Part shown: piece by piece, positions 20,035-43,300 of the stretch
Numbering within the stretch: position 1 is the first letter of the stretch
How the letters are laid out: each line of letters opens with the position of its first letter
Source of the DNA: Klebsormidium nitens
Lineage: Eukaryota; Plantae; Klebsormidiophyceae
DNA length: 64,000 bases
Assembly: GCA_000708835.1 (NCBI GenBank)
Contig: DF236995.1
Coordinates: 1 to 64,000 of the forward strand
Reading direction: 5' to 3'
The notes under the pieces: model-generated
What the model saw: the letters and a program-made list of their open reading frames with translations, nothing else
What the model was told of the DNA's origin: nothing
The model's database searches: none
Position numbers and translations under genes: made by a program

Positions 20035-23000
20035 ATGGCCTTCAGCTTCCAAACAAGTGGTATGTTGCTCCTTCCGCTAGCTGCATTTCTCGCCGCTTGT
20101 TTAGCAAACCCAGGGGCCGCAGTCAGCCCTAACCCAAGCATCCCATCCAACCAATGGATCCCCTCTAAGGGGGGGTGCAGCAAGTATTGCGCCGCTATGA
20201 TGCAAGTCTGCCCCCCATCCCTGTTTCCCCAGGATGGGTTCCAAGCTCTGGCTGACTGCGAGGAAGCATGCCCGCTTTATCTGGTGCGCGGAGACGACGC
20301 TGCCTTATGGGGGGACAGTTTTGAGTGCCGCTTTAACCATGTGGGTTACATCGTAAGTCAGCAGCTGCCAGCGGCGGCTTATTGCCCCCAAGCAGGTGCG
20401 AGCGGAGGTGACACGTGCGTCGGCGGAACAAAGCTGGAAGAGTGAGTGCCCACATATGACAACCTCCTCTTTTCTCATCCCTTCTTTCCAAACACAAATG
20501 GATGCGGTGCACATTTCTCTCTGTTTTTACTTCTGTAAGTTTCAATGCCTTCCTGTGACATCCTACGACGAACGCCTTCTGGTGATATGCTATATTTGCC
20601 TTCAACTGATCGTCTGCGTTGGCCCGTCTCCCGGACGTTTCACTTTAAAGTTTTTCTCATCTGTTTTCCCCCCCTTTCTTTTTTTCCTCCCCTCATCCCT
20701 TGCGGTACTCTGCGGTCAGGACTTCCCTGGTGTCTTAAACGCTGAACTTCTCTGAAACGTTTGTCCTCAAGGAACCTGCATGACATCCGTCGCATCTCCA
20801 AAAACAGACACTGTCAGTAAAAAGACGTTCACCACTGCTGAGTAGATGCACGATTGCTTTAGCTGTGGTGTTTAGAAAGCGAGAACCCCCTTTCACCAGA
20901 TTGTTCAAAGGGAAGACAGATTAGGCAGGAAGGCATGGTGCAGGGCTGTTCCTTTACAGACATGCATGGGGTACCTGATTGCGGGTCCACTTAGTGTTCT
21001 TCCGTGGTTAGCCTCCATTTTTGCTGCAAGTCGTACTTTCAGTCTAGGGTTTTTCTGGAAGGCAGCTGTCATCTCCGTGCCGATTCTTCTGATACGCCCA
21101 CAGTAGGTGATGATCATGTCACATCACAGTCGTTGTCCTTTTTTTGCTTCCCCTTTCCGTTTGAGTATGCCTATGCTCTACCTGCTTTACTGTGGTTATG
21201 CTTCCAACCTGGACTATCCATGCTTGTCACTTTCAAAAAGCAAGGTTTTCAGATACACTTGCCAGATACGCAATTTTTCTAGTCACAACATCCATATTGG
21301 TTGCTATAAGTCTTGTCTGCAAAGCGTTGTGCCTTAACTACCAGACAATCTGATGGTTTCACTTATCTGAGTGCAGTCAAAACAGACTGCCTCACTTTAA
21401 AACGTCCCTTCTCCAGGTTCTTCGAGCTAAAGTCGTTTGGGAAAGCTCAGCTGTGGAATGGAACTCGCTCGCCTCTTGGGAGCCTCCTTACCGGAACCAC
21501 CTACCTAGCAGAGGAGAGGCAGCAACTTCTGTTCAAGAATGTGTTCGACTCATACGAGTTGTATGACGACTTGGTATGTGCGCGGCTGAGCTTGCTACTT
21601 CCAGTGTAATCAAAACCTTCTAGTGCAGCCTCTTGGTAAAAGTCAATCTCTGGTTGAAGTTAAGTCTTGATTGAACGTGATCTATATGACGACGTCCCGG
21701 TACGTGCACAACTGAGCTTGCCACTTTTAAACCGTAATTAGACCTTGTAGTACAGCCTCTGGTGAAGAAGAACCTTGGTAAAAACTAGATTCTTGGTTCA
21801 AGCTATATCTTGGTTGAAAATAACTCTTGATTGATGTGAACCTTGGCTAAGCAGCCGGTGGCTGGTGTGTAGAAACGATGATCTGAGAATCAGAAAGAAT
21901 CAGGTTGTCACTCCTTTTCGGAGCTGCAGTGCCGCTCTTGCACGTCAATCCCGCAGGCGCCTCCACACGAGGCTTGGGTGACGTAAAGATTGAAAATCTG
22001 CATATGGAAAGAATAGAAGAGCGGTCAAAGATGCAGTTTTGGGAATATATTCAGGCCTTCGAGCAGGCACTCTTCGAAGTGATGGACAGAGTGTGGACAC
22101 CTGTCGATACCGTGTCCACTTGCGGATCATACAGACCGGCACGCTCTTCAGATCGTTCCAGGTTCTACAGTTCTGTGTGCCTTGGGTTGGAGCGGGCAGT
22201 CAAACCCCAGCCTCCTTGCCTCTTCGAACCAGCTGACACACTTCTAAATGTTCTCTCCTCTTGGCCTGCATTGCCCAATGACATAACCCGTCTTTCGTTT
22301 CCTTGCCTCAAGCATCCGAACATCAGCTGTTCTCCGTCCGACTTGCGTTACCGCACCGCCGACGGGCGGTGCAACAGCCCCTCCCTCCCGTCCATGGGCA
22401 TGGCCTCTACTCGATTTGGCAAGAACAACCCCCCCGCATTCACACCAGCCTCTTCCTCCGAGCTTCCCCCGGACCTGCTAAACCCCAACCCCTTCCTGGT
22501 CGCCGAGACGCTCCTGAGACGGAACGGCGGATTCCGGCCGGCGGAAGGGCTAAACCTGCTAATCCCGGCCTGGCTCCAGTTCAACAACCACGACTGGTTC
22601 AACCACGGGCGCGACGCGGCCGCGCCGCCGCTGTGCTTACCGATGGGGGCCCTGTCGGACGCGGATCCACTCGGTTCCGCAGCCCGGAACGGCAGCGGAA
22701 CATTGGAACAGGGGGCTGAATGTTTCAACCTTACGCGCACCCAGCAGTCGAGTCGGCCGGGGACTTTTGCCAATACTGTGACGCACTGGTGGGACGCTTC
22801 GCAGCTGTACGGTTCGGACAATCTGACGCAGGGGGGCCTTCGGACGTACGAGGGGGGGGAGATTTGCACAGTGAAGGGGCCGTTTGGAGAGGATCGGCTG
22901 CCGAGGGAGAGCGAAACCGGGTTACCGGTGACCGGGTTTAACGACGACTGGTGGATGGGGCTCAGTTTGATGCACACGCTGTTTGTGAAGGAGCACAACG

Positions 23001-26000
23001 CAGTGGCGCAGGCGATCCAAGTGAGTCCTCGAAGGGTCAAGTTTTCATTGTCTGGAGCAACAAGGAATCAGCAACTGAAAGGGGGGAAGAGCCCCTTTTC
23101 TATTCTCGCTTTCAACTCATCTTAGTTCTCCACGTGCTTGAGCTTTGAGGCGCTCTCAATAGAGGCGGGTCGATCAGCTAGGAAGGAAAGCGAGTAACGC
23201 TGGGGCTTTGTTGGCTCATGTCGGATGGACGTTTTCGTTGGCCTTCTTCCAGGGCCACCAAACCTCTTGCACTGATTGTTCCCAGCCTCCAAAACCTTTT
23301 TTTACGCAATTCAGCCCCAGACTCTGCTCTTCTGCTCTCAGGCGGCCGACCTGTCTCTCTCCGACGAAGAACTGTTCCAAAAGGCGCGGCTCGTCATTGC
23401 GGCGGAGATTGCCAAAATCCATACCCTCGAATGGATGCCCACAATTCTTGGATTCAACCCGGTGCTTTCCTCCGGGTTGGACATCATCTGGCACGGCCTT
23501 AGCGCAGACCTGCCCATCCCGTCGGGTTTTGACACCGGGATCCTGCAGGTAAGAAGGACAGGATTTGAAGAAGGAATCATCCGAAAAGGACTTGCGGGAG
23601 ACGATTTTACCTTTCTGATCGAGGATTAATGATCAGATTCTCATGTTTTGTGCCCGTTCCAGGGCTATTTTTAAGTTGGCGAGCTTTACGCGGCGTTTGA
23701 AGGATATTATGATCCAGGGGAGCGAGCATGCAAGTCTGTGCGACGGCTGTGACAAAGATCTCTCGGCTACCCTGCTCTGGGTATGCGAGCAACGGGCACG
23801 TAATCGTGTGCTTCAAAGCCAATGAAAAGTGATGAGGCTCTTCTGAGACTTTTTGATGTGCTGTCCACGTCTGCTCTTCGTTCCAGGTTCGTTGCACGTG
23901 TGTGCTCCGTCATGCGATTTTGGTTCGTAAACGGCCGAATCTTTCGTTTGCGAGTTTGAACGGTCTCGCTGACGTCAGCAACGCTCCCCTCCTTCTCTGA
24001 TCGCACCCGGCAATTCATGTGACCGTCTGTTGACGCTCCTCCCCCCCCTCTCAGTTTTCGGCGGCTCTGATCGTTGGTGCATCTTCTTCCCTGCTTGGCA
24101 GAGCCCAGCAGTTCGGGGCATCGCCGACAAGACCTACTACGCCGGGACGCCTTTCTCCATCACCGAGGAATTTGCGGCGGTCTCCCGAATGCACTCTCTG
24201 CTGCCGGAGACGATAACGCTCCTGCCAAACAGCACCGTTAACGGGGGCCCGGCAAATGTGACGGTGTATCCGGTCAGCAACACGTCGTTTGCGGGGGCGG
24301 AGGCGCTGCTCGACCGGCATAGCATCCAGGAATGGCTGACCGCTTTTGGAACCGGTAAGCTTTGCGGAGCCTTTGTTCACAAGAGCGCCTCGTATCGACT
24401 TTTATCTGTGTCGAGACGGCTGTGGTCGCAGCTATGCTCGGCATGAGCTCCTTCTAAAAGGACGAGCAAAGTTTGATCAGTTCAAGTGCGACTGCCCATT
24501 TTGGCAGTCTGAGAATGGCCACAACGGCCTGAGATCGTCGTTTCGATCTGACCTTTCTTGCCTCCGTGGAGAAGCACGGGCATTTGCGGCGAAGGTCATC
24601 GCAGGTGAAATATTGCGGCACTTGAGAAATTTGGGCTGCCCATAGAAGTCTGCTTGCTTCTCTGTACCCGCTGTGAACAGTCTCTCAGTCTAGCATTGAA
24701 AAGAAGCCGACCCATCGAGCCACGCGTCCACGCAGGCACCCCCGGCGCGCTGACGCTGAACAACTACCCTGACTTCCTCGCCACACTAGTTCACCCGACG
24801 AGGGGATCCCTCAACATGGCCGCCATCGACATCGTGCGCGACCGCGAGCGCGGCGTACTGCGCTACAACGCGCTCCGGCGCGCGCTGCGGCTCACCCCCA
24901 TCACGACCTTCGAAGACCTCACGCGTGAGGAGTACACCTTATCTTGTAGCGTTGCCAGATTTAAGTCTTTTTCTCACGGTTGAGTTGGAGAACGTTTGAT
25001 CCAAACGGTCGGTGAAAGGCTGAGGGTGCTGCTTCAACGTTTTGACCAGGTTCGACCGAATATGCTTAAGGAAAGGGCAGATCAGAATCTTCTTATCTAT
25101 GCCATTCAAAGGGAGGGGTCAGGACATTCTGCAAGAAACGCTGTGCTGGGAACTGACGTTAACTCTCTTGGAATAGGAACCACAACTCATTATGCTTCTC
25201 GCCGCCATAAAATCAATCGCGGTGCAGCTGTACACGTACATCCAGAATCTTGTCGACACACACTGCCTTGCTTCCTTCTTCTCCGTAGCCGACACGAGCG
25301 TTATGATCCTGCCCCGTCTCTTGTTCCTTGTTTCTCTCATGAACCGCTCCTTTATTTATTGCCGCGACTTCCCGAGCTTCCTAAACTGATGAAACGCCTC
25401 TTCATCGGTCCGTCATTCCCTATTCTCTCATCTGATGAACGCCTCTGCAATCCGATTCACTCCCCCTGTATCTCATCCGCAGTCTTTCTCTTCCGCAGCA
25501 AACGCGACGGTCGTGTCCCTGCTCCGCTCCGTCTACTCCAGCGCTGATGACGTGGACCTCCTCGTCGGCTGCCTCGCGGAGGAGCCGCGGCCGCGGGGTT
25601 TTTCGTTCGGCGAGACCGCATTCACACTCATCCTGCAAATGGCCTCTCGCCTCCTCAAGACCGACCGCTTCTTCCAGGAGGCCTTCACGCCCAACGTGTA
25701 CTCGCAGACGGGGATTGACTGGGTCAACAACGCAACGTTCAAAAACGTAAGTGCCTTGATTCGAGAGAAATGTTTCGGTAGCTAAGTCGGTTACCGCCGT
25801 GAGGCGCTCTGACCTGAGGTCGTTTGAAGTCTGTGACCGACGCTCTTGAAAGATAAGAATTGTCAAAGGCGAGCGAGAGAGTGAGGTCCGGTCCAAACTT
25901 TGAGCATAACTGTTGAGGCCCTTGAATTAACACGTTCAAGTGGACGGTTCTTTCCTCGGCTCGGATTTCGATGTCCGTCCAAAGCTCGCGCCGTTCTCGA

Positions 26001-28979
26001 AGACTATTTTCAAAGCTGCTGCCAAAGACTCCCGACCCCCGTGAAAGCCGACGCTAGGCCGGCAGTGCGAGAGCGTGTCAGATTCGCGCAACGGAATGAT
26101 TGTCGACGCCGAGACATTGTCCATCTCTCGTTGGCTCTCAACATGTGGCCTGATCGATGAGGGACAAGCAAGCCCATTCACCAGAGTCACGAAGAAGAGC
26201 TTTCAGATAAACTCAGGGCCGACAGTATATAAGCAATTAACAAACCGAAGTTGATCTTTGCCGCACAGGTGCTTCTGCGCCACTTCCCGGAGCTCGCCCC
26301 CGCCCTCGCCGGTCTCCCTAACCCGTTCGTAACCTGCAACCCTTTCGGCCAAACCAGCCAACCACCGACCGCCAACTCCTTCCTCCCGAGCGCCTACGAC
26401 GTGGCGACCGCAAAGCTCGCCGCCCGCGGAAAAGGTCGCCCGGGGCTTCAGAATCGAGCGCCCCAGCCACTTTCCGCGGCTGACATTTTCGAGCAGAACC
26501 TGGCAAACCAACCGGACATAAGCTTTGACGATCTGCCCGGTAACCCGGTGGTTGACTGCCGGGTTAGTAAGTTGTTAGCCCCCGTGAAAACCTGTCTCGG
26601 GGGGGTGTCTCAGCGGTGTTGCGAAGCGATCGACGCAGCGTTCGCGCCTGGCGCAAATGCGTCGACCAGAAACTGTTTGTGCTTGCCGACGGTCGCGGCC
26701 GCGGGGCGGCAGGTCGCGCGCGGGTTTGGGGTCGACTTCGAAACGGTGAGGCGGCGCGGAGGTGAACCGACCACCATTGTCAGGTTCTCTGTTGGTTCTA
26801 TATCTGAGACTGGTGCCTGGATCGGAGTAGCTTGCATCAATTCAAGTTGCTTTATGTGCACGGCAAGGTTTGGAAAAGAAACCGGGTTGGAGGCCGATGT
26901 GGATGCGGAGTCTAAGATCTAGACTGGGAGGTTCCGCTTTCTTGAGCCCTTCGAACGAAGGTCTTCAATCCGGCCGGCTGCAAAGCCCCACTTCGCTTCC
27001 TCCCGTCCCAAAGTCTATTCTTGCTGTTCTAACCGACTTACCTAAACGAAGTTTGAAGACCGATCAGGCGTACTTTGATCTCGTAACTTGTTAATGAAAC
27101 ATTTACCCGCTATATTTGACTCTACCCCAGGTTTTGTCCGACTGTTGGATGGACTACGGGCTGCAAACCAACTGGTTTGGCGAGATCAACGGCCACTGCC
27201 CGGCGTTCCCGTCGCAATCCGACCCGTACACGTGGCGCGCGCTCGCGCCCAACATGGTCGTTCTGCTCCTCATCTACTGGGCGTTATGTGCCGCCGCGGA
27301 TTCCGCGCTCCGCCGCTGGGCGCCGCCCTACCGGAACCTCTCGCCGCTCAAGCAGCGGAACGTCGCGACGTACTTCCTCGAGGTCCTGGTGACGTCAGCG
27401 GCGCTCGCGCTGACGCTGACGTACGGCTCGGACGTCCTCTTGTACGGCCGCACCGGATCGCCCAACGTGCGGATCGGCTTACTGCTGATAGCGACGCTCT
27501 ACGTGTTCGAGCTGATCTACCGGAACGAGACCGGAATTCCGCTCCTGCTGCACCATCTCATCACGGTCCTGCTGCTCGTGCTGCTCGTTTTTTCGAGCAA
27601 AGACAACGCGCCGTCGGCCGAGGCGCGTATCGTTCAGCGGTTTGGGCTGCTCATATCGCTCCACGCGTCCACGGAGCAGCTCACGTTCGTGGGGCTCGCC
27701 ATGTACCGGCTGGGCCACCCCTGGGCCGCGCGCGTCATGAAGGTGAGCGCGCGCGAGCCTTTACATTGCGCGCGAACGTTCGCCGAGCAAGGAAGGGGTG
27801 TGGCTCGTGAAATGTTGCGCTCACCTTCTTTTTTCCTGAGATTACTAACTCCGACTTGCTAATGTCTTCAATTCTCCGGCGCTGGTTTTGACCATTGGAG
27901 CAGGGTTGCCTGAAAACACTCATTTGGAAATCTCAGTTGAGGAAGCACCGCATCTGGACTTATTTCGGATCGAGGATGTCGCTTTGAAGCGCCGGTGCCT
28001 CCAATCGGTGGAGCCGCAATCCGGGGCGCATACTAGAGGTTTTCCAGATGCCGTATAAATTTCCTGAGGTCTTGACCAAAGCTAGTGCGAAGTCCTGTCC
28101 AGGCTAGCGGCCGTCCAGACACGAGGAAGTTATATATCAGAGATCACTGGCAGGCCCTTCGAAGCACTCCTGAAATGTTGAGCGACCAGACTCTGGCGTT
28201 CAAAATCCTATTATTGTAGGACTCAATAATAGGAGTGAAGTTACTGACAGCTCTCACTCGGGCACGGTCCACTTCAATGCGAGAGATCAGAATCAGGTCA
28301 GATGCCACTCCGCCTGCCTGGACTTTTTGTCATGCTCGGGTCTGGACCACATGTTTTTAGATACTCATCAACCGTTCCCAAAAAACGGTGCCCTCTCTGC
28401 AGATCTCCACGTGGCAGGTCCTCGTCTTCAAGCTCGTCATCAACGCGCTGACGTGGGTACTCATGATCGACTACTACGTCACCAAATACGACGACCCATC
28501 CGCATCGCGTACCAGCACCAACTGGCACATCGTATGGCCTTTCCTGATCCCCTTACGCAACACGGCTCTCTTCTTCGCCCAACTCTACTCCGTCTACATC
28601 ATCCACGTCATCGCGTCGCAGCACGAGGGGCGCGCGCGCGCGCTCCACTTGGGGCGCCGCGCTGGCGCCGCCAATCCCAGCGGTGGCGACACCTCGTCCG
28701 GTGATGACGTCAGCGAGCCCGGGGGGGGGAAGGTGACGTGGCAGCCGGAGGGCACGCCCAACGAGGAGAAGAAGATGCCTGCTTTTGAGCGGAGCCGGAG
28801 CGCGCCGGCGGCCGCGCGGTTTGCACGCCAGCCTACTTCGCACTGCGAGCACACGTTTGCGCGCCAGGCGGGCGAGCGACAGGATCCGCGACGCGTTCGA
28901 CCAAGACATGGAGATCGTGTGAGCGCGCGCGCGTGCATGGTTTCGAGCCGCTTGGCTCGCGCTCGCGCACAAGGTGGGC
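20035..28979 (+). CDS. Multidomain fusion: signal peptide, Cys-rich module, alpha-dioxygenase-like heme domain (peroxidase-cyclooxygenase superfamily), 8-Cys LTP/prolamin-like domain, and about 7-TM TLC-like domain; 3' end runs into the gap
   Basis: Exons: 20035-20441, 21417-21573, 22313-23020, 23342-23548, 24102-24354, 24736-24924, 25499-25746, 26269-26745, 27131-27742 and 28403-about 28930/28979. Every junction is GT-AG and phase-compatible. DOX-family motifs: YRTADGRCN, AWLQFNNHDWFNH, NTVTHWWDASQLYG, LFVKEHN, ARLVIAAEIAKIHTLEW, PFSITEEFAAVSRMHSLLP, IDIVRDRERGVLRYN, DLLVGCLAE, GETAF and DRFF. Confidence 0.85.
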
Positions 28980-28999
28980 NNNNNNNNNNNNNNNNNNNN
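28980..28999. other. Assembly gap (20 N)
   Basis: Run of N characters, preceded by very GC-rich (GC)n-like sequence. Confidence 1.
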
Positions 29000-31117
29000 T
29001 GATAAGAAGATCCTTCAAAGCGCGCGCAACTTCCTTCGCGTCTGAGGAAGAGAAGCGCATACAGTGTATTTTATCCAATTCTCGGATATAAAGTATCCAG
29101 CCGACTGGTAAAGTGTAGCATATATAATTATCACCACTTTGTAACGTAGGCACGCTCAGATCGGGCCGGAAACTTCACTTGGAAAGTCTATACTTGGACG
29201 TTAATAGTACCCGGATCAAATATACAGAGTCTTGTCACTCCTTGTTTGGGGTTTGTAGTCGTCTTCCCTTCCAGATGCAGGACTCTCTTCGCTTGCAGTC
29301 AATGCAGAAGTACGGTACGTCAAACAACTAGTAGGCAATCAACGTCCTTCACCGGGCGCCACGTCTGCGGCCATGTACAATTGTAGTTGATCATTGTAAA
29401 CAATAGCAAAAAGTATAGACGATCTTAAAGCTGCCCTTCACTGAATTTTTGTCTGCTCACACAAACTCACAACAGATATACAAAGGACTACCGTATAAGG
29501 GCAGAAGAAGAGGCCGTTCTTTTGGATCTTTGACAATGAACGGTAGGAAGGAGCCGGCACCCGCGAATGATTGATATGAACATGCATGTGAGGCGCTTGA
29601 CGATGAAGGATCCGACGAATTCTTAGTGCAGGAGCTAGCCTGCTAATTTCAAAATGTGACCAAGCTTTTCGTGATTTCGTGACCATTGAGTCTGACCGCG
29701 AAAACATGGTTTATGGATACGCATATCACTTTTGATCAGAAAATAGTAGTTCAATGTTCAAGAACCATCCTTCCATAGTGCACATGCCAAACTCGATTGA
29801 AATGCATTTCAATACGGCGGTCAGCGAGGGGGCATGGTCACAACCGGATAGCTTGTCATTGTTATGTTGATTAAAGATCTGGAGAATCTTCAATGTGACG
29901 TTGTGATTGATGTCGAATGCGTCATGCATCTGAAAATTGGTTTAAAACTCGAGCGCCTCTCTGCTATCCCTCAGTGCGATGGGAATCTAGACCCATGGCG
30001 TCTACTATTACCGGCCGCGCCCCTCGGGGCGCGGCTGGCATCGGGAGGACGAGTGCGCTTTTGACGGGGTTTCGCAGGGGTTCTGCGTCATCCTTGCGCG
30101 ATTAAGTTTACAATCATTTGGATAAATCCTTCCTGCATGGGGGCCGAGCCAAGTGACGCAGAATGAACGTCACATGTAATCCTTGCGTACTGACGCGTGT
30201 CAACCAGTTTCCCGGAAAGAGAGCACAAAGTTACTGCTGATTAGCTAACGGGACTGACGACCACATAATATAGGATATAGCGTTACTCACCACTGACCAG
30301 ACGGCTGAGCCTGAGCAGTGAGGTCCAATCCAGATTCCAGTGCCGTCAAGATGAGTCGACGAGAGGCGACGGGCATCACACGGGCATCGGGATCGTTCCC
30401 GGCCCCAGTTGACTCAGCCGAGGAGCGGAGTCGCCCGAAAACTCCGACGTGGTGTCAACTACCTATTAGAGGCTGCAGGCCTGATCTCCAAAAATCGCAA
30501 AGATAAAACACGGATAGTGGTGGCCTTGGGTAACACCAGACCGACCGGTTTGAGGACTGCCGCCGGGACGCTTCGAAAGTTCGTGTCGAACGCTGGTACT
30601 CCTTTTCCGTTCGCATAATGCAGTACAACCCAATAGACCAATACCCAGGAAAGCTCCCTATTTGTACGCTAGAACCTAATCATATGCTGCATGACTGAGT
30701 TGGATCAATCCAATCCAGCTCAGCCCAGCTGGATTGGTGTCCGCCAACTCCGGCGCGGGCGGTCACTAAAGTTGCGAATGCCCATCGTCAATCATGAGCA
30801 TTCCAAGACGTCTGCTCAGTGCTCAGAGTACTTGAGTACGGTACTTATCAGAGTGGGCTCAGATTCAGAGGTTCTCAAGCTCCCTTCTTCCCTAGCTTCG
30901 TCTTTCTGCCAGAGTCTGGTCTTTGCTACGAACCCCCTTGACGCAACGCTGATAATCTAGTATGACTTGAGCTTTGAGGAGTTGAGGGGGAAAGGGCGTA
31001 AGAAAGGTGTTAGTATCTGCGGTAATCGAAGAAAGCTGCCTAGAGAGGTAGACTTCACCTTCTAGTGGCCAGCTCCACATTCGTGCTCCTTCGTGGCCCC
31101 TTCACAGCGGCTCGACA

Positions 31118-34100
31118 TGGGCGGCGCAATGGGAAAGAAGACGCACTTTGTGGCTTTGCAAGTTCTCTTGCTGAGCTTTCTCGTCAGCGCGCAAGGCCAG
31201 AACTCCAGCTGCGCCTCTGGTCAACTCCGCGTTAGGGGTTTCGCCAAGACTCTCACCTATGTTGTAGCAGAGCAGCAGGGGTTCTTTGCCGGGGAGGGCC
31301 TCTCGCTGTGCTTTACCCAGGTAAGTCTTGGAAGTCGCCTTGTCCTTCGCTGAACAGAGTCAAGCGGAGAGGATGGGGTTGTCAGCATTTGTGGTGTTTT
31401 CAAGACAAGGTTCCACATACCCACCTACAGCTGTTGTTCGTACCCACAAGACAGTCATGAGACAGTCATGTACATATCGATGGAGCTCGCATATATCACA
31501 CCACAAATGCTGGTCACTGAACTCAGACAAGCACAGGCACAATGAAGAGACACAGTGGTGCGATACAGCAGCTTAGAAGCCCGGCCAGGTTAAGTAATCA
31601 GTTATAGAGCGCTAACATAACGGCTGCTCCTGAATTGGTACCATTAGCAAATCAAAGCCTTGATGGTTGGGTACGAGGCTGGCTAGCTGGATGTCAGGCG
31701 CCAACTGAACCATGCTTCTGGTCAAAGTAGCTTCTCTTCCAATGTCCATAACATGGGGACAGGAGAACAAGGCATCCGAATGATTTCAAGGAATCTGCAT
31801 ATCGCAGAAGCAGCACTGACTATCAGGCGCACAGGTCTCTTGCTTTCTGATAAGAGTAGAGTTGTCCTTCCAGCCACTTTGTCCTCCTGATAATGGACGC
31901 ACGTACTCCTGGAAACAGCCAGAACCTTTGTCATTACTCAACAGCGTTCATTTTGTTTTCTGGTCTCAGCATGAAGTAGTGCAAGCAATGCAGAAGTAAC
32001 ATCTCATGTATCAAGCCTGTATGTCACACCATAGCAAAATGTTGGCGCGCGACTCTTCTACGTGGCAGCTGCGCACTTGAGCCTCAAAATGTGCAGTAGG
32101 GACAATGCTTTTGTTGACAGTTGGTGTCTTCAACTTACTTGCTCTCAGCATTGTCCTCCAGCTCTGTCAAAAGCCCGACACAATGCACCCCAGCTAAATT
32201 TGCCTTTTAACACCATTGACCCTAAGACCTTATCCTGAAAGGCACTCAAACCCTACCGAGCAATCTAAGTGGCAGTCTTCCATTGTTGGAACGACCTACA
32301 TTCACGTGCTCAAAGGATAGCTGAAAGAGTCTCTTGCAAGCTGCATACGTTTTAACAGATTTTGGATTCTGACCGGAAGTTTATCGTCCACAAACAGTAC
32401 TCTTCATGCAAACTCTGATGGGTTTGTGTTGTCCCTGGTGCAGGTAACTGGCTCCATCGCTCAATTCAACGACTTCAAGGCCGGCAAGTATGACATCCTA
32501 TCATCAGCGCCCGACAACTATATCAACCGGTGCGTTTTCCTGAAGCCCGAAGTACTTTGTAATGCTTTAAATCCAACCTCAGGATCAATGTGAGCATTTA
32601 ACGTAGACTTGCAAGCTGACCTGGTGTCTTGATTTTCGGTGCAGGGCCTTGTGGCCTTCCGTGATCCGCAAAGTGCAGTTGCCACAACACTTCAAAACAT
32701 CTGATTTCAAAAACTAACAGTCCGCCATCGAAATCCTCCCCAGTTCTAGCTCTGGTCAATCCACTAACATGGCATGCTTGTTGTTTAGCAATGCTTTCAA
32801 AACCGAAAGCCAAAGTGAGCTGTTAGAGAAGCTCGATCCAAGGCCGGGGTATACTTCAAGGAGCCAGTGATAGAAAGTTCTTATGGTGCATCCGCATCCC
32901 TGCTGTCTCAGCATTTCCTACATAGTACCCGTTTTTTGCTGGCAAGCAACGAGCGCGTAGCAGCACGGAAGCCTGGCGACAAGTTGCGGTCCTTCTGTAC
33001 CGCTTGATCTCAAGGATTGGCAAGTCCGTCTCAAGCAGATGTGCATCCGACAATCACGCAGTATATTCTTCTCTGCTGCAAGTAGAAGCATTGGTTTCCT
33101 ACGTTTCCATGTCGTGTTGCTCCTTCAATGCGGTGCTCAGTATCGGACGGCGACTTGTAGAGCCCGGAATGTATTCTACGGGACTGTTTTGCAGAGGGAC
33201 GGGCTATAAGATGTAAGTGGCGAAGACGTTTACCGTCGTTTTGGCTGCGGCCAGAGACTCAAACTTTGACACCCTCGTGTCTTTTCCACCCAGCTCACAG
33301 GACTCTTATTGAATGCTACCTAAATTGATTACCAATTAATATCGAGTCCCAGTCAAGTTCTTGGACAAAGAAACGGGATTAACCCGGCTCGAAGGCTTGC
33401 TGTCGCGCCCCAAGTCTGGTCTTCGGATATACAGCCTACTCTACCTACAAGCCTCTAACCACCCACGTACAGTTAACGTTCAAAATATCTGTGCAGCTTT
33501 GTGAACGAGAACCTCCCGCTCCAGATCTTCGCGGAGTCGGGCGAGAGCGAGGGCATTACGATGGTCGGCCCTGGGCGCCGGTGGCATAACGAGCGTGCCG
33601 GATCTGCGGGGCAAGCCTTTCCTGGTGGACGCAGTGGACTCGGGCAACTCTTTCACAGCCCAGTAAATCTTCTCAGTGTTCAATTTGACCCTCGACCGGG
33701 ACTACTCGTTTGTGGTGCGACGGGCTAGTTCTTTCCTTCCCTTCTTCTTCTGAATACTTTGTTTGCAATAGACTATCACCGCGCAGGATATCTGCTCAGT
33801 CATCGACGGAACCTCGAACCGAGACTACATACCTGTGGTGCGCGCCGTTCTTACCTTCCTCTTCCCGTTGAACTTTTCCTTTTTTCTATTTGACTTGACG
33901 ATCATCGCGCAGATTATCTCCTTTTTCTTCGATCGGCATGAGACTCGACCCTTTGAGGACACGTTTGTGGTACGCCTCCTTCTGACTTCCTTTCTACTCT
34001 CAAGTTTTACCCTTTGTTTCTCTTGGGACTCTCCCAGCAGGAAGTTGCAATACGCTTTCAAGTAGACGTGACTTATGTGCACAATCTGCTTCCAAAGGCC

Positions 34101-36164
34101 GCCGCTCTCAGTCAAAAGACGAAAAGCGGGCTCCCACAGGCTTCTTCTTTTTGGAGCCTATCCGAAAGACTCGCAAGTCAACCACCAGATCCAACCGGCT
34201 GGTTATTGGTGGAAGGGAGCTCTTCTTCGGGGCGGTGATGGAACGGAGTTGCTTGCCTTTGATTCAACCACACATCCCCAACGCGGTGTTCAACTATTTT
34301 GCAATTGCGACCACTTCTGAAAAGTATTTGGATGTTGGCGACTAGTAGCCGGCAAATACGAGCCCAAACTCGCGAGCAGCGCTGACTTGTGCAGTATCCC
34401 CGCAACAAAAGTAAGTAACCCTTCTAAGTGTTCAAATCCGGTTTGGCACCGTTTTTTTAGCACACAATCAGACCGTTTACCTGTCGAGAAAACAAGCGCA
34501 GCAGATGTTTGCTTCTTCGCAGGTCGGCGAGAGGGACACGTGTCTGCAACCAGCTGACCTGTCAGGGACAGAACATTGCGCTACAAAAGGACAATTCTCT
34601 CATCTCGCTTCGAGAAGAAGATCATCCTGGTCCAAGGAATGATTGAAGATTCTCACGACGATTTCGCAACACTCTCCTTGTTGCTTATGCAACAGCCCGT
34701 CGGCGGAACAAGTTGATCGTGCTACAAAAGGCTGCTCTCTCATCGCTCTGACATATCCGAGATAACCTGGTCGAGGGAACAACCAAAGGAATGCACGATG
34801 ATTTCGCAACGCTCTCCTCGTCGTTTTTGAAACAGGCCGTCGGCGGAACGAGTTGAACGTGCTACAAAAGGCTGCTCTCTCATCGCTTCGAGAACGTCAA
34901 GATAATCTGGTCGAAGGAACAAACAAAGGAATCGACGAAACTGTCGCAACAACTCTCCTCCTCGTTTCTCAAACAGCCCGTTGGCGGAACCCCGGCGCGC
35001 GTCGCCGCACTCGTCGCGGGACAGACCCCCACCGGCACCCCCGGCTACGGCACGATGGTTACTCCCGCCGCTAGTTATGACGTCCCGCGCCTCACCAACG
35101 GCACGTGCCAGATCATCGCAGACTTTGATACGCTATGGGCGCCTCGCAAGTACTCGCAGACGGCGTGGGCCGCAGACCGGGGCTTGCTGGCTGCGAACCA
35201 AGACACCGTGCAGCGCTTCCTGAGGGCGTATATACGCGCGGGGCAGTTTATACTCGACTCCGCCAATAAGCAGGCGACGGTCGCCGGGCTGGCCCAGAGC
35301 AATGGGATCTCCCTTACGGTCTGTCGCCGTCTTTCTCCTTCCTTTAGTTTCCTCTTGCCGTTTGCCGTTCGGGTGTTGCTTGCTAATTCCCGACCCCGAT
35401 AAAACGTGTACTCAGTTCGGTTGTAAAGTTTTCAAGATTTCTCCTCGTTAATGTCTCGCACAAGCAGAACCTCAAGTCCGACGCTGCTCGAGCTCACGTC
35501 CTTCGAAGGCTTCAAAAAGAAAACGCAGTCTCGGTGCAGATTGTTGCCCTGATCAAACTCCTGAGATCTGGATGCGGGCGAATATTTCCCTCTCTGAGCC
35601 GAGTACGCTGACAAATCGTGGTACCCTAGTATGCACGAGATTCGTCCACAATGCAAATCCAAGCTGGACCTCATTCAAAAACCGTTTTGCTACCAGATGA
35701 GCAGAAACTATTCCAGTTGTCTACTCTCTGTTGATCTCGAGACCTGCTTCACTGCCCATCTTTTGAAGCCAAGGCCGCGCACAAGAAACTTTCCTGGCTT
35801 TGAAGCTCTGAATTCCGGTGCTTTCAGACCCGTTTATTCTGTGGTCCGGGGCCGACAGACCACAGCTGTTAAAAGGAACGACAAACCGTCTGTGCATGGC
35901 GCCCAGACTGTAATAACCGTTGCCTGTTCCCCGGTGCTGTCGCAGGCTGCGCAGCAGTACTTCGACGACAGCTTCGCGCGTTACGGCCAGACCATCTTGG
36001 GCAAGATCGACAAGAAGTCGATCCAGGGCGTCGTGGACCTGCGTAACATGTTCGGCGGGTTTCGAGTCCCGGTTGATAGCGCCGCACTAGTTAAGGAGTC
36101 GCTGCACCACGGGCTGATCACGTCCGAGTACTGGGGCGAGCCATACGCGGCGCTGCGTGCTTGA
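31118..36164 (+). CDS. Secreted NMT1/THI5/SsuA-like periplasmic-binding-fold protein; reading frame disrupted in exons 3-4 (assembly error or pseudogene)
   Basis: Exons: about 31118-31320, 32444-32529, 33497-33662, about 33787-33837, 34977-35318 and 35946-36164. There is a hydrophobic signal segment (FVALQVLLLSFLVSAQG). Family-like motifs: VAEQQGFFAGEGL, GKYDILSSAPDN, ITSVPDLRGKPFLVDAVDSG, DYIPVPVGGTPARVAALVAG and NQDTVQRFLRAYIRA. A +1 frameshift lies near 33565. Confidence 0.75.
34575..34991 (+). repeat. Three tandem copies of a 140-141 bp unit ending in the acceptor and first bases of the following exon
   Basis: CAG|(C/G)CCGT(C/T)GGCGGAAC starts at 34696, 34836 and 34977. GCTACAAAAGG...CTCTCATC and TCGCAAC..CTCTCCT are repeated in each unit. 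Confidence 0.9.
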
Positions 36165-37367
36165 GTCGAGTAGTACTTAGAAATGGGCTGTGTGCTCTCA
36201 GGGCTTTCGCGTTTGGGCTTGTAACGTCCTACTTTTCACCAGATTTTAGAGTCGCGCGTCAGAGTGTTGTGAATATGTGAAGTCACTGGCATGCAGGTTT
36301 AAAATCGGCTGCGGTTCAAAGCCAGTGAATGTCTATGTGAATTTAGTGGAGTCGTTGATCAAGGAACCATGCTTACCTTGGGCCGGCCATGCAAAGTGAT
36401 GAACCGGCCTGCATCAAGCCCCGAGTTCAAAGGAGTCACCAAGTGTGTTGCGTGCCTACTAGTAGCCTGAATCAGTGCACACGGCCCCACTGGGCCAGCG
36501 TTCGAAAGCTATACCAGCTGGCTGAATCTGTACTAACCGAACGTGTTGAAGTCAATGATGGCGGTGGGGGCGGCATGCATACCGGCCTGGCCAGGCAGGC
36601 ACAATCCGATGATGGGCTTAGAGCCGGCCATATATGCATGTTGGATCTTCAAGTTGGATCGAACGTGACCCGTATCATATGCGTGCTGCATGTGCCATGA
36701 ATGTACTATAGAGCAGAACTGGATTAATCCGCTTACAGAATGCAATGATGCCATCGAGTAGCTCGATCGAACGATCCGCATCATTTCAAAATTCAGACCT
36801 AGCTTCGCCGTCGACGGCGACGGCCCGGCCGTGCCGCGCCTATCGAGTCTCAGTCTTAGGCCCGGCTCCACATGCATCCGATCGCGACAATTGAATGAAT
36901 ACATTGAGCAATTCAATCATGTGATTGACGCCATGATCCGACAGTGTCGGAGTATATTATGGCAATCCAATGACCGTACCATCAGTGAGAGCTACACATA
37001 ACTATGATGCAGGACACTAAGGATAAACGTACCGCAATGCATTCCGGCCACAATATCATGCAAGTTTGGATCACCACGTGATTGGACTGTCACTCTGTTC
37101 TATATATTGATTTAAGTGCATAAAAAACTTTCAAGAACCTTCAAATACAACGATTGAGTGTCTGTCGTAATGGACGCGTCCTTTCAAGTCAGCAGCAAGC
37201 CCGCAGACCCGCGCTCATCCCCGTGTTTCAATGCTCTGCAAACCTTTCAAACGTTCGCTTTGATTACTGCTTTATTCAGCAGTCAGTAACAAAAGAATAT
37301 GATCTCTGCCCAAGAACTTACATGGTCATGGAACCTCGTCATTTTATGCCGAATGGCGACTGTGGGC

Positions 37368-40300
37368 TCAAAATGCAATCTGCTCTAACGCTGGCGTCGT
37401 AATTCCGCGGCACGTCTCCTTATGTCCTGCCCTCCAAGCCAGTTTTTGACACTGGGCCCCGCAATATCTGGCCTGCACGTCGGAAAAAAGGGCGATTGGT
37501 ATCACACCAGAACATTCTTGGTTTTGTGTGTAGACTGCTGCTGACTCAGGCAAACGGAGATCGAGGCAATCTCATAGCTATATGGCAGAATACGCGATCA
37601 TCGATGTGGGCGACTCTAAATTTCTTGTTTTGGACCCGTAAAGAATCACGTGGTGCGCTATGCAAGTAAAAACTCCGTCCTGCGTCAGACATGCCGGAGA
37701 ATGCGACGACGTTGCGCTTCTACATACAAGCGCCAACATAAGAAGTTCCGGCTCTGAATAGGAGAGGCTTTCCAGCCAGCAAACCAACGCATAATACAAG
37801 AGGGACCTTCCAGGGACCAGTACGGCCATGCCGACCCTCCTGCTGTTGTTGTGAGCCGCTTCGATTGAACACAGAGCCAAGCCAGAAGGCAGACAGAAAT
37901 GCTCGAGACTAATGCACAGTCCGTCAGTCCGCTTGACCAGACTCCTGAGCTGGAGACTCGAAACTCGGCCGTGCAGATTGCCACGCTTAGTCCCGAAACG
38001 GCCCAGGAGCTGAGATCAGCACACACTGTGCTTACTACCAGGTAAACGCAGGCAGTACGACATGACCTTTTCAGTCTCGCATCCAACATGCTAACAGAGT
38101 ACGGTAAGTAGAAAGCGACGAAGACAGTGTTCACATGACAAAAGCGTAAACGAGACGTCTTCCGGGGAGGCTCTCAGTGGACCAATGAATCAGAACTGTC
38201 GATTCCCGTACCTTGTTGCACTTGCTGCACTTCTTGAGCTTCGCCCCGTCTTTTGCCGGCTCTTGGCAGTGCTCGCAGACCCTTGCCGGCTTGTTCCTCG
38301 TTTCTAGCGGATTCGCCTCCTCAGTCGGTGGCGTTCCGTTTCCGGACGTCGAAGCTCCGGAACCGCTCGCTCCGGACTTCTTCTTTGGAGGTCTCGTCGG
38401 GCTGGATTGGCGAGCGTCTGCCAAGAATCAGGGCAAGACCAAGATGAATTATAATGGGCGTCGGGGTTGCCTGACGTGAGCCGCTATCTTGGACGACGTC
38501 ATAGATTGGACGGAAAGTTCTTGATGGCTTCCGCACCGGTCAATCGTCTTTGTCCGTGCATGGCCTACGCCCATGTTGATAAGGATCGGAGGCTTTTCGG
38601 CGCTCATAACATTCTTTCGCAAAACACCTCTGCTAGTAATAAGATTTTTCAATCAGCTCTAAGGTCAGAGTTTGAGTTAAGACTCTGCACGAGGAGGGCC
38701 TCTGCTGAAATCGTCTGCTTGTGGACACTGAAAGACCGTGATTACCCCCCAGTCTGAGGATTTTACTTGATCGGAAAGTATCCAATGATCGGGCGACCAT
38801 TAGGCAGGTCAGGCAAGACACTCAAAGTTGTTTAGAAAGGGCTCTCAAACACCGTAAACCGCAATCGGCCTGCGTGGATAGGCCGGTCGAGACCCCCAGC
38901 TTGAAAAGCTCTATCCGAGGCTTCAATTTGACGAAATGTAAGAGCTTTTTGAATATCCGAGGCTATTGTTCGACAAAATGTAAGAGCTTTCTGATGGTTC
39001 CTTCACTGCTCCCAGACTCCACCTTCATTTGCCGGAACCGCACACCATAGGAGAAAGCCAACGCAAGACTGCTACAGGCTAGTTCCTTTCTAGTCAATGC
39101 TGAAAACGAGTTTGGCAACCTACCCTCCAGCTCTTTGCACGCCTTTTGGTACTCCGCCAGGTGTTTCCTGACAGCTGCCGCCGTCACTTTCTGCATCCGG
39201 ACCAAGGCGTTCACAGCCTCGTCGAATGCTGCTCTGCGCCGCCCCACCAACACCTCTTTCGCGACTGCATCAGGGTCCGTCAAACACTCTGCAGACATGC
39301 GTCCAACCATCAGGATGAGGCGCTGAGAAGCATAGAACAACAAGTGTTCGACAGTCGACAGCTTCAAGAAACAAGTTGCAAAAGAAAAGCTGTGGAGCGA
39401 ATTGACGAATAGATTACGTGGAGAATGTATCTCGTTTCTGTCCCTTACATTCACTTCCGCTCCGCTGCATTTGAGCAGAATTGGCAGACAGGTCAACAAT
39501 CTTGTCTTGGAGAGAATTGTGCTTGAAACGGTAGCAAAACATCTAGTGTGCATCTTTTGATAGGAAGGAGGTCCCCGTAAAAGAGAGGGGGCCCGACCAT
39601 AAATGGTCTAAGGTCCAACGTGTTCCTGCAATACGGTCACTATCTATCAGGTTTGCTTGTCATGCTGTTTCCCAAGTTCGAAGAACTCATGGCAATCGAA
39701 TATACCTGCCGTGATGATCCCTGGCTTACAATCTGTCCTGACTCGCCTTATCGTAAGCTCCCACCTTCTTGTACAAAACTTCTGTCACGGACTGTTTACA
39801 GCCTTCTCGTTTCTGCCGTCAGAGCATGTCATGCAATCCAGGGATGGCCGCCTCGCATAAGGCCAATCGGATCGAGTCCTCTGATCGGAGCCAGACAAAG
39901 CAACGCAAAAGAGAACGGTGCCGGCGGATCTTTTGTAGACAGCGAACAGCGGAAAGAGTCTCGCAATTGGCGACCATCTCCAAAATCAGAACGACTTTTG
40001 AAAAGTTGGAGAGCAACTGACCCGTGTCTCGCAACCACGTCTCCACCTTCTCCCTCTGCTTCGGGATGATCTTGTGAGCATACTCTTGATCGTTCGTCAT
40101 CTCAGCACACGCCTTTGCGGTGTTGATCCGCTGTCGGTTTGAGGCCGGAAGCTTCAAGGCGGCAAGCCACTCTAAGTAGCCTCCCGCGGCGAACAGGTCT
40201 ATAACATCCATTTGACACGCCTGCGGAAACGAGCGATTGAATGAACGACAGCGCACAAAAGCAGCGAAGTCAGAATGGCCCGAGAAGGCAGTTAAGAATG

Positions 40301-43300
40301 ATCCGACTCGGAGTAGACAGCCTTGACCACACTCCGGTGCTGGTTTGTGCAGATACAGAGAGGCACAGGCACCCCTGCATCGAACGAGAACTACACTCGG
40401 TTCCTGTGACAAATCAAGTGGCCTTCTCCAAAGCGGTTCACTTCGTGATCGCCTGACGTAAAGTTGGGACCACCACCGGAAATTCCATATCTGGAACATA
40501 CAAAAAGCCGCTGGGATTCTTTTTCAATCACGAAAGAGACGCACAACGATCCGAAAAGCCTCTCTTCAATCTGGATAAACAAGTGACGCGTGTCGTTGAA
40601 AATCCGTTTCTGGTTCAAAAAAGAGTTGTGCTTTATGAAGGCTGAACGAATCCAGAAACAAAAGCCAGTCGATCGAACGCCTCACCTGTGCTTACGGTCT
40701 CCACTGTGATCGAAGCCAACACGCCGGCTTGCATCGACCAAGTTTTCGAGAGAAAGGGTCGACAAAAGCAAATCGGGTCCTCACCTTCATCACGATGTTG
40801 TCTGCATCTGCGGCTTGCAACCGCATCAGCTCGCAGAAGAGCGATCCATTGCTCCAGGCCCTAGTACCCTGGAGATCCTCGTCATCACTCCGCGTGTTTT
40901 CGGCTAGACACCTCGCCAGGCCGAAGTTGTCGAAGGCAAGCGCGGCTGCGCAAGCCAGCGCCTGCGGGTCAAGGATCGATCTCGTAAGCTCCGGTTATTA
41001 ACCCATGCTAAAGCAGGACTCTTAACCGAGCCTTTACAGGTTTGTATCGTGCGTCATTCACGCTCTGTACCGTTCAACCAGACATGAGAGAATCAGTAAC
41101 ATTCGAGAAACTTGCTGTTGAGAGAGGAAGATGCGCAGCGATCGGAGAAGTCCTCTTGAGCGACAAGATCAGCCAACTGTTGTACCAAGACCTTTCTTGG
41201 GTCCTGAAGGTCATATGCGTCCTAGATCTCTGTAGCAACTTATCAGTCTCATGATGCCTTTCTTGAAAGTAAGAAACAGGTGGACGCTTTGGAATAGTGA
41301 AGACCTAGCGCCACCATTCAAGCGGTTCTTCCGCAATGTGCCTGATGCACGCACAACTCATGAAGTACGCTTTCAGGGTGATTTTTTGGTCGGGATCGAA
41401 ACTTTCTGTGACTCAAATTTTTGAACCCCAGCGCTCCTGCTGTCTTGATTGGATGAGAGGTCAGCATTACAATAGCTGATTCTCCAGGAGGTAAGTGTAA
41501 GCTTCTCATCACGAGTGGTCAGGTTGAAGGCAGACCTTTTGATTCCGCTTGCGCCCTGAGTCAGACTCAACAATTGCCAAGAAAGAAAGGAGATACGGAC
41601 GGGCCTCAGTCCGATAATGCCACTTCATACTACACATGTAAGGAAAACACTAGTGGGCCAACTGTGCTGACCTGTTCGTCGTGCATTTGCCCTCCCCAGG
41701 GCTCGCACTGTTCCAGGATGGGAACCAGTCTTTCTATGACGTCGCCTTCCTTTCCCCGCGTACTGTTGGCGACGGTTTCCAGGAGGATGTCCCAAACCCA
41801 GGAGCACTCAAAGGAGTAGTCCCATGCTGAGAACATCTCTTGAGCGTAACCGGAGACATGCTCCACTGCAAATCAAGATAAACCTTTTCAGAATGTATGA
41901 GCATTATTCAAAAAGGATTTCTCGAAGGGCCCCGCAGTCCCAAGATGAAGCGAGCACCATCTTACAACTTGTCAGCAAGAAAAGATAGTAGCGCCCGACA
42001 AACAAAAGAGTAGCCCATGTTGCAAACACTCTGTCAACTAGCCCAGAGATATGACCTCACTGCAAATCAAGCAAAGGTCCCTCTGAGTACGTATCTGCAG
42101 TTATTTTCAAAAGGGCCGGCAGTCGTTGGAAAGATGGCGCAAGCGTCGTCTTGCAGATTTGCGCAAGCAAGCATGAAGGCGCCCACGCACTCCAAGGGTG
42201 ATTCGTGCAAATAGCCCGAGAAGCATAATCTCACTTCCTAGGGTCTGCATTTTTGGGGAACCTAGTCTTGTTGAGGTTGACCACGATGTTCAGAAAAGGC
42301 AGAACCGAAACCAGTGGCGGGAGCTTCTTGCTCTCATTGGCAGACACATAAGATCTACATAAAGCTTTTGATAGGTTCCACAATCCAGTCTGTATGGACT
42401 GATAGAGGGCACAAACGTTCGGGGCCCCTTCAGCCATGCCCAATCTCCTGAGACGAGGCCTAGCGAGACATTATAAAATGCACAGTAAGATCAAAGTTTT
42501 CTGAATCCATGTCTGCAAAACACAACCTTACCGCCGTCGCTGCTTCCTAGGAGTTTGGCGAGCCGCTCTAGTTGCTCATTGGAGCAGAGCGGCAGATACG
42601 GCGTCAGTGCTTTAGCGGCGTGCTGACATGTGTATGCAAGGTCATCAAACTCATCTCGCTCCTCATAAACCCTCGCAAGGTCAGGCCCGCAGCAGGCAAC
42701 CTCACCAGCTCATCCAACACCGCTTTCAACTTCTTCGCCGCCTCTAGTTCGCTGGGGCAGAGTGTCCCCCACATTCTCTTGTTGTCTTGTGGAGAATCTT
42801 GGCTCGCACTCGCTGCGTGTTTCAAAAAGTCGCTCCTCAGGTCCTTCGCTGCTCTGCCTGACAATTGGAACTCAAAGGGGAGCTCGTCAATCTCCAGAAC
42901 CTCCTTGTACTCTCCCACCAGTGCCTCCCTGTATCTGATTTTGGCCATGCCAGCCTCCACTGTTAGCTGCTTCCTCTCCCCGTCCCCCAGTTTCTTAAAA
43001 TTCTCTTCCAAATTCCCCGGCGGCCTCAACACTGTGGCTCCCATGCAACGCTCGTCCTTTTCCTCCAAGAATTCCATGTACGGGTCGTGCCCCGAGAGGT
43101 CGCTGTCAAAATCATCGCCCCTCCGGTCAAGCTCCCCTTTCGCGACCACCGACCAGCCCTTAAACTTCTGCAAGAGCTCCCGCCGAAGCTTGACGACACT
43201 GATCTTCTTGGCCATTGCTGCAATGCCAACACTAGCTGGACTGCCTTCAGGGACTGGCGTTCGATTCCTACAACAGAGCTGTGCGCCCAGAACCCCAATG

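Follow-up and report, generated by a model that had tools for sequence, protein, structure and literature searches.

The 64,000-nt window of the Klebsormidium nitens genome analysed here (contig DF236995.1, positions 1 to 64,000) carries on its plus strand a multi-exon eukaryotic gene that encodes, among other parts, a haem domain of the alpha-dioxygenase (alpha-DOX) type. On balance, this domain is probably a haem-binding pseudo-dioxygenase, that is, a lineage-specific and catalytically disabled form of the alpha-DOX haem domain. The substitutions on which this reading is based are found in the window's own lineage and are concentrated in the active site, in a gene whose reading frame is open and whose remaining sequence is under constraint. 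Judged by its sequence relationships, the putative haem domain is by descent an alpha-DOX-type member of the peroxidase-cyclooxygenase superfamily.

In alpha-DOXs a peroxide oxidises the haem, the ferryl haem oxidises a tyrosine (Tyr379 in the rice enzyme, whose numbering is used below), and the tyrosyl radical abstracts the C-alpha hydrogen of the fatty acid (PMC8720084, PMC9305512, PMC13049297). His311 and Arg559 bind the substrate carboxylate, Thr316 positions the C-alpha, and Phe375 and Phe552 stack on Tyr379; every family sequence keeps the tyrosine (PMC8720084). It has likewise been described as strictly conserved in a study noting that many alpha-DOXs also have peroxidase activity (PMC9305512). 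In the window, the proximal motif (24180-24194) reads V-S-R-M-H, with TCC (Ser) at 24183-24185, exactly as a first-pass annotation of this DNA had it. When aligned to rice PIOX and Arabidopsis DOX1, the serine falls on the tyrosine of VYRMH (Y382 in 4kvj, corresponding to native Tyr379; native Tyr386 in 4hhr). Both haem ligands, which the annotation had called intact, are indeed present: the distal histidine is CAC at 22589-22591, within Q-F-N-N-H-D-W (22577-22597), and the proximal histidine is CAC at 24192-24194.

The annotation had further claimed that two motifs of the carboxylate-binding site, HTLEWM (23420-23437) and MASRLL, depart from the family, and that together with the tyrosine they make three coordinated changes. 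For the first motif, the methionine does replace the threonine at Thr316/Thr323 (rice/Arabidopsis), but the supposed change from Asp to Glu is no change for this clade, in which Glu is the norm. For the second, a leucine (25651-25653) does fall on Arg559/Arg566; the motif itself spans 25639-25656, and the interval that had been assigned to it, 25648-25653, covers the R-L pair only. The coordinated replacement of Tyr379, Arg559 and Thr316 thus stands without its Asp-to-Glu part.

We quantified these departures by aligning the window exon peptides and 270 relatives, namely the 120 nearest ones from a word search with exon A and 150 cluster representatives from an exhaustive HMMER search, to a hidden Markov model built from the full-length set. 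The Tyr379 column is Y in 229 of 230 relatives and S in the window; the Arg559 column is R in 211 of 212 and L in the window; the Thr316 column is T or S in 242 of 245 and M in the window. A fourth replacement, absent from the annotation, occurs at Phe552, where 210 of 212 relatives have F and the window has I. The acidic position of HT-x-E-W is E in 234 and D in 11 of 246 relatives, and E in the window. Both haem histidines (His157 and His382), found in 265 of 270 and 230 of 231 relatives, respectively, are kept. The same conservation was apparent in a first search among 115 full-length members, all of which carry [VCA]YR[LM]H, with HT-x-[ED]-WT in 113 and ASR[RQ]L in 111 (ASRRL in 110). Of the carboxylate-binding pair, then, His311 is kept and Arg559 lost; the radical tyrosine is missing; and the arrangement of Thr316 with the Phe375/Phe552 stack is broken, with Phe375 alone kept. 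As these defining catalytic features fail, the domain ought not to be classed functionally with the alpha-dioxygenases.

Conservation reaches 95% or more in 77 columns, 72 of which are unchanged in the window, and the five lost are Tyr379, Phe552, Arg559 and two mild exchanges (R to K and D to N) common to all algal relatives. Kept active-site residues include Gln153, His157, His162, Trp262, Arg380, His382, Arg479 and Arg483, as well as His311, Trp315, Phe375, Phe549, Ala556 and Arg558. The window-specific changes are N260D (22946), T316M (23435), M to L at 23477, N to I at 23486, V376A (24174), Y379S (24183), P383S (24195), I551L (25627), F552I (25630), R559L (25651) and M561K (25657), distributed over 2.7 kb in four exons. 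All of them differ by a single base from the codon of a relative (for instance, GAC in the window versus AAC in relatives at Asn260), and all lie in or next to the active site; those in the haem pocket, N260D and V376A, are the milder ones. The residues on the haem and peroxide side are therefore kept while those on the oxygenase side are replaced, a pattern that supports the annotation's proposal of a domain that would bind haem without being a canonical alpha-dioxygenase.

It could be argued that the key codon is a sequencing or assembly error, TAC having been read as TCC, since the two differ by one base and no contig of the four runs compared covers the codon. We regard this as very improbable: independent errors would not select these codons for at least 11 window-specific changes across four exons and 2.7 kb. 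The clustering of the changes, and the canonical residues of relatives with the same gene structure, favour real divergence, as had been suggested.

Four algal loci (L001-L004), found through searches with the exon E open reading frame (ORF) and with exon A, show in which lineage these changes arose; a word search with the exon C ORF gave two candidates, neither of them significant. L002 comes from Logan SRR23617307, L004 from SRR14092358 and L001, which is close to L003, from SRR14092359, and L003 is an 87-kb contig of JGI metagenome 3300060284 that contains the whole gene. All ten exon types occur in the same order in the four loci, with 60-90% amino acid identity per exon (tblastn) and with splice sites as in the window where checked. 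Positions 6925-10738 of L002 are collinear with 37404-40985 of the window, a 4-kb stretch downstream of the gene, and because of this synteny we consider L002 the orthologue in a related species. It is ~85% identical, with a synonymous divergence (dS) from the window of ~0.3-0.4, and it keeps Phe552 and Arg559; its Tyr exon lies outside the contig. In the next relatives, at 60-80% identity, none of the key residues has been lost. Site by site, where the four loci have coverage, VYRMH is found in L003 and L004, HTLEWT (Thr codon ACG) in L001 and L003, FTIF[LV]Q[MQ]ASRRLM in L002, L003 and L004, Asn260 in L001 and L003, Val376 in L003 and L004, and Met561 wherever covered. Since the relatives are canonical at every key site covered, the window changes are specific to its own lineage.

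We observed constraint on most of the gene. Pairwise ratios of nonsynonymous to synonymous substitution (dN/dS) against L002 are 0.22 for DOX exons D and E, 0.18 for exon F and 0.24 for exon G; only the tail of exon H (28403-28918 versus L002 3808-4311), probably a disordered cytosolic tail, reaches ~1.0 against ~0.2 for the rest of the gene. When changes are polarised against L003 and L004, exons D-H show 22 firm amino acid changes for the window branch compared with 36 for that of L002, and private departures from the family consensus number 15 in the window lineage and 14 in the L003 lineage. Below the top conservation class, the consensus is kept at 51 of 66 and 35 of 71 columns in the window, compared with 53 of 67 and 37 of 71 in L003. 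Decay of the whole gene was accordingly rejected, given the open frame, the low dN/dS, the lack of a rate excess and a consensus kept as in L003; none of the marks of a pseudogene (stops, frameshifts, lost splice sites, neutral dN/dS) was found. What distinguishes the window is where its changes fall. Its departures lie on more conserved columns than those of L003 (Mann-Whitney p = 0.01), and its specific changes are enriched at active-site positions (6 of 29 versus 15 of 461; Fisher one-sided p = 7e-4), the 29 positions having been taken from published haem-contact and substrate-channel lists of rice alpha-DOX and mapped by ungapped motif offsets. In exons D and E, four of the five firmly polarised window-branch changes are within eleven residues of the substrate helix.

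These figures bear on the possibility that the gene is a young unitary pseudogene, silent since recently, with the active-site changes as its first visible damage. Such a history would agree with the presence of several individually inactivating substitutions, with the lack of any contig on the gene in the runs guessed to be RNA, and with the window branch of exons D and E, where 8 nonsynonymous changes and 1 synonymous one stand against 4 and 5 for L002, all small numbers. We nevertheless judge it unlikely. The 1258 codons in 10 exons are free of stops and frameshifts, with intact splice sites; the window branch is not longer than that of L002 or L003; conserved columns outside the active site are kept as in relatives; and a neutral phase brief enough to produce no excess elsewhere would by our estimate have hit these ~6 codons ~0.05 times, the enrichment at the active site likewise arguing against a random spread.

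A pseudo-dioxygenase under continued constraint would explain both sides of the pattern. In the simplest account, oxygenase function was lost early on the window branch, following its separation from the nearest sampled relative, with single-base substitutions removing the tyrosine (to Ser), Phe552 (to Ile), Arg559 (to Leu) and Thr316 (to Met), after which a dozen or so oxygenase-site codons would have drifted. Taking half of the dS given above, roughly 5-6 of ~14 such codons would be expected to change by neutral drift, near the number observed. The haem histidines, the distal Gln and His, Arg380, Arg479, Arg483 and the fold-defining residues meanwhile stayed under purifying selection, and the scaffold would have kept a use, either in peroxidase-type chemistry or by serving the larger protein in a structural or lipid-binding capacity. 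Because the haem ligands and pocket are kept and the rest of the domain is constrained, we infer that the domain still folds and binds haem; because the tyrosine, the stacking Phe, the Arg and the Thr are all gone, tyrosyl-radical alpha-oxygenation should have been lost. Its remaining role would then be at most peroxidase-type chemistry, or that of a structural or lipid-binding component.

A more active outcome is also conceivable, in which the domain became a new enzyme, with a remodelled, more hydrophobic pocket (Ser, Ile, Leu and Met, and a displaced Lys) and a new haem chemistry (peroxidase, peroxygenase or hydroperoxide transformation on a non-carboxylate lipid). The clustering of the polarised changes of exons D and E in one substrate helix is in keeping with this, as is the exchange of RRLM for RLLK, which moves a positive charge two residues along the helix rather than deleting it. 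The peroxide-side residues are intact, and the many N-x-S/T sequons together with the signal peptide point to a location outside the cell or in a lumen, where peroxide would be available. Positive selection is, however, not needed, since relaxation of the oxygenase-site codons alone gives, by the estimate above, about the observed number of changes, and there is no known Tyr-less member of the clade with activity to point to. We therefore hold neofunctionalisation to be rather unlikely. Similarly doubtful is the proposal that here, for the first time in a natural protein of the tyrosyl-radical fatty-acid dioxygenase clade (alpha-DOX, COX, LDS type), both the radical tyrosine and the carboxylate clamp have been lost while selection has retained the protein, its haem domain having been repurposed. 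If that were true, the repurposed domain might be a peroxidase or peroxygenase, or a haem-based sensor of lipid or peroxide, acting on the surface of this streptophyte alga in concert with the lipid-transfer-like module and the membrane domain.

Several points weigh against the reading as a constrained pseudo-dioxygenase. The TCC codon at 24183-24185 and the other changed codons are known from the assembly only, and haem binding is deduced from the kept residues. L002 is without exons A-C, so that for the Tyr, Thr316 and Asn260 changes the deeper L003/L004 split is the only limit on their age. No second copy of the gene was found within the 64-kb window, to which that search was confined, and a canonical copy may exist elsewhere in the genome. 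Finally, 24 runs from the same species, guessed to be RNA, hold practically none of the words of the stretch, in contigs that cannot show absence; four runs gave no contig on the gene, the only matches being two of 33-50 nt to repeats at 21407-21593. A search at contig level thus shows neither silence nor expression.

Pfam PF03098 (An_peroxidase) matches exons A, B, D and E with 128.6, 34.2, 41.9 and 65.3 bits, respectively (cut-off 25), over model positions 1-514 of 530, which places the domain in the peroxidase-cyclooxygenase superfamily; exon C is matched through the alpha-DOX entries of the PDB only. For every DOX exon, the top matches among solved structures are rice alpha-DOX (4KVJ, 4KVL) and Arabidopsis DOX1 (4HHR; phmmer versus PDB). 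The closest relatives overall are bacterial, cyanobacterial and protist alpha-DOX-like proteins at 42-49% identity, and the closest full-length ones are bacterial and cyanobacterial 'peroxidase family proteins' of ~590 amino acids (42-44% identity on exon A), followed, with weak tree support, by protist and algal sequences from Ploeotia, Botryococcus and Diplonema, the last being an 'Alpha-dioxygenase 2'. The annotated protein of the window itself was not among the matches: none above 68% identity was found in the word search (length window 223-710 amino acids) and none above ~50% in the search of representatives. Orthology to the plant-type alpha-DOXs was rejected, as plant enzymes reach ~95 bits with exon A, where the bacterial relatives score 160-204 bits; plant alpha-DOX is also absent among the best 150 representatives of the exhaustive HMMER search. 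In an exon A tree (FastTree), the neighbours of the algal clade are euglenid, trebouxiophyte and diplonemid sequences, but support is weak (0.44-0.77) and we draw no conclusion on its origin.

The window domain nonetheless has the An_peroxidase fold family in common with rice alpha-DOX/PIOX (4KVJ, 4KVK) and Arabidopsis DOX1 (4HHR, 4HHS), and it shares with the plant enzymes the distal QFxxHDW histidine, the proximal RMH histidine, His311, Trp315, Phe375, Arg558 and the arginines of RDRER. The plant enzymes have Tyr379, Phe552, Arg559 and Thr316, all four of which are replaced in the window; moreover, they are stand-alone monotopic proteins of ~620-640 amino acids, whereas the window domain sits in a fusion of at least 1258. 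Of the known forms that lack the tyrosine, the rice Y379F mutant (4KVL), with F at the same aligned column, comes nearest. Its crystal structure could be solved without the radical tyrosine, which fits with the idea that loss of the tyrosine need not destroy the fold. Unlike the window protein, which is natural, has Ser and is also without Phe552, Arg559 and Thr316, it is an engineered single change to Phe. A conceptual precedent is the human peroxidasin-like protein, in which a domain of haem-peroxidase fold has lost key catalytic residues and is retained in a multidomain protein; it belongs to the peroxidasin branch, and the residues lost are other than those in the window domain. Among the cyanobacterial matches, the key-residue numbering, compared with the published one, is within 0-4 of CalDOX and LepDOX, and these relatives use HT[VI]EWT with Glu, like the window. 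CalDOX and LepDOX have been shown to alpha-oxygenate C10-C14 acids (Kim et al. 2022, PMC8720084).

The haem domain is predicted to be one part of a larger protein of at least 1258 amino acids, in which a signal peptide, a Cys-rich N-terminal domain, the alpha-DOX-like domain, an eight-cysteine module resembling lipid-transfer proteins and a multi-pass membrane domain follow one another. The junctions between exons S1 and Z0 and between F and G are in phase, with splice sites conserved in relatives, and the cysteine pattern C..C..CC..CxC..C..C, which L002-L004 also have, extends across the splice junction between exons F and G. The eight-cysteine module has no Pfam match even at E = 1-5, and when the N-terminal Cys-rich exon, the membrane exons and the C-terminal tail from the window, L003 and L004 were compared with Pfam, only a sub-threshold EXPERA match (E = 0.1) was returned. 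For the membrane domain, an atlas search gave 'TLC domain' at 0.89, which we take as a lead only. Many N-x-S/T sequons fit a secretory route, as read from the sequence. This predicted fusion architecture is conserved in at least four algal sources, and no description of it was found in the literature searched.

Residues 76-134 of P0174, a Ploeotia vitrea transcript product of 865 amino acids, show weak similarity to the Cys-rich domain of exon S1 (27% over 59 amino acids, E = 0.002 in a search of 99 proteins). Because of this similarity in a euglenid, the combination of Cys-rich and DOX domains may be older than the streptophyte algae.

In the relatives, where the oxygenase site is canonical, the fusion may be a membrane-tethered fatty-acid oxygenase; its architecture suggests lipid-oxidising machinery that is tethered to the membrane and probably extracellular. 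The window protein is a natural exception to a tyrosine that has been treated as strictly conserved (PMC8720084, PMC9305512), and together with its orthologues it offers a ready comparison that could show the role of the haem scaffold without radical chemistry. For annotators, it would be advisable to exclude the gene from alpha-dioxygenase counts in the oxylipin pathways of early-diverging streptophytes.

The gene model comprises ten exons and 1258 codons without a stop, with all phases consistent and nine GT-AG introns, none of which showed a lost splice site, or the exons a frameshift, in the phase check. Splice sites were read from the sequence and then compared with relatives where these cover the junctions. 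The DOX exons are collinear with residues 12-579 of the ~587-amino-acid bacterial homologues, with no segment absent (tblastn). Coordinates and features of the exons are listed in Table 1.

Table 1. Exons of the predicted gene, with coordinates in the window, features (residues in rice numbering) and the evidence for each
Exon	Coordinates	Strand	Features	Basis and comparison
S1	20035..20441	+	Start codon, signal-peptide-like N-terminus, Cys-rich domain; donor GTGAGT after two bases of a codon	ORF listing; donor conserved in L003 and L001; 61% amino acid identity to L003 and L001; same place upstream of the DOX exons
Z0	21417..21573	+	Helix at the N-terminus of the alpha-DOX-like domain; in rice alpha-DOX, this region forms the substrate entrance	Matches residues 12-35 of bacterial homologue P0002 (tblastn); 73-75% amino acid identity to L003 and L001; acceptor and donor conserved
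A	22313..23020	+	First half of the An_peroxidase domain; distal QFNNHDW; Asn260 equivalent is Asp (22946-22948)	Pfam PF03098, E = 3.5e-37; aligns to rice alpha-DOX chain residues 81-286
B	23342..23548	+	HTLEWM helix; His311 equivalent kept (23420-23422); Thr316 equivalent is Met (23435-23437); Ile at 23486-23488 where the family has Asn (91%)	
C	24102..24354	+	Proximal haem motif TEEFAAVSRMHS; position 376 is Ala (24174-24176); Tyr379 equivalent is Ser (TCC, 24183-24185); proximal His (24192-24194)	L003 and L004 read TEEFVAVYRMHP with TAC/TAT
D	24736..24924	+	Haem-side helix with RDRER; Arg479 and Arg483 equivalents kept	Pfam match; aligns to Arabidopsis DOX1 chain residues 460-526; 90% amino acid identity to L002
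E	25499..25746	+	Substrate-channel helix FTLILQMASRLLK; Arg558 kept; Ile551 to Leu (25627), Phe552 to Ile (25630-25632), Arg559 to Leu (25651-25653), Met561 to Lys (25657-25659)	
F	26269..26745	+	Last ~20 residues of DOX homology, then Cys-rich tail (C..C..CC..CxC) in the same exon; donor GTGAGG, phase 0	
G	27131..27742	+	Last two Cys of the eight-cysteine pattern, then multi-pass hydrophobic domain; acceptor CAG/GTT (cut at the slash)	Acceptor conserved in L002; phase 0 with exon F
H	28403..28918 (at least)	+	Remainder of the membrane domain and fast-evolving tail	

Exon G is taken as an internal exon because the relatives have no Met at its start. The frame of the last exon is still open where the gap of Ns at 28981-29000 cuts it. 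The interval separating the gene from the next syntenic block (37404-40985) measures ~8 kb in the window (29000-37400) and ~2.5 kb in L002. The single ORF of at least 150 amino acids fully inside this interval is 35631-36164; the last-exon ORF, 28388-29002, only runs in from the gene.

Two exon ends have partial copies nearby. An imperfect second copy of the exon Z0 donor end, including the first part of the intron, lies 126 nt downstream (21565-21600 and 21691-21726; 78% identity), and short 'TCTTGGT..TTGATTGA' repeats follow the duplication, in the region 21631-21834. Parts of this neighbourhood, 21407-21439 and 21544-21593, are matched by contigs of one run (guessed to be RNA) at only 90-95%, so similar sequence must occur elsewhere in the genome. 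In L004, the intron that follows exon E contains, at 2184-2231 and 2329-2376, two additional and degenerate copies of that exon's end (the segment ..VYSQTGIDWVNNATF..).

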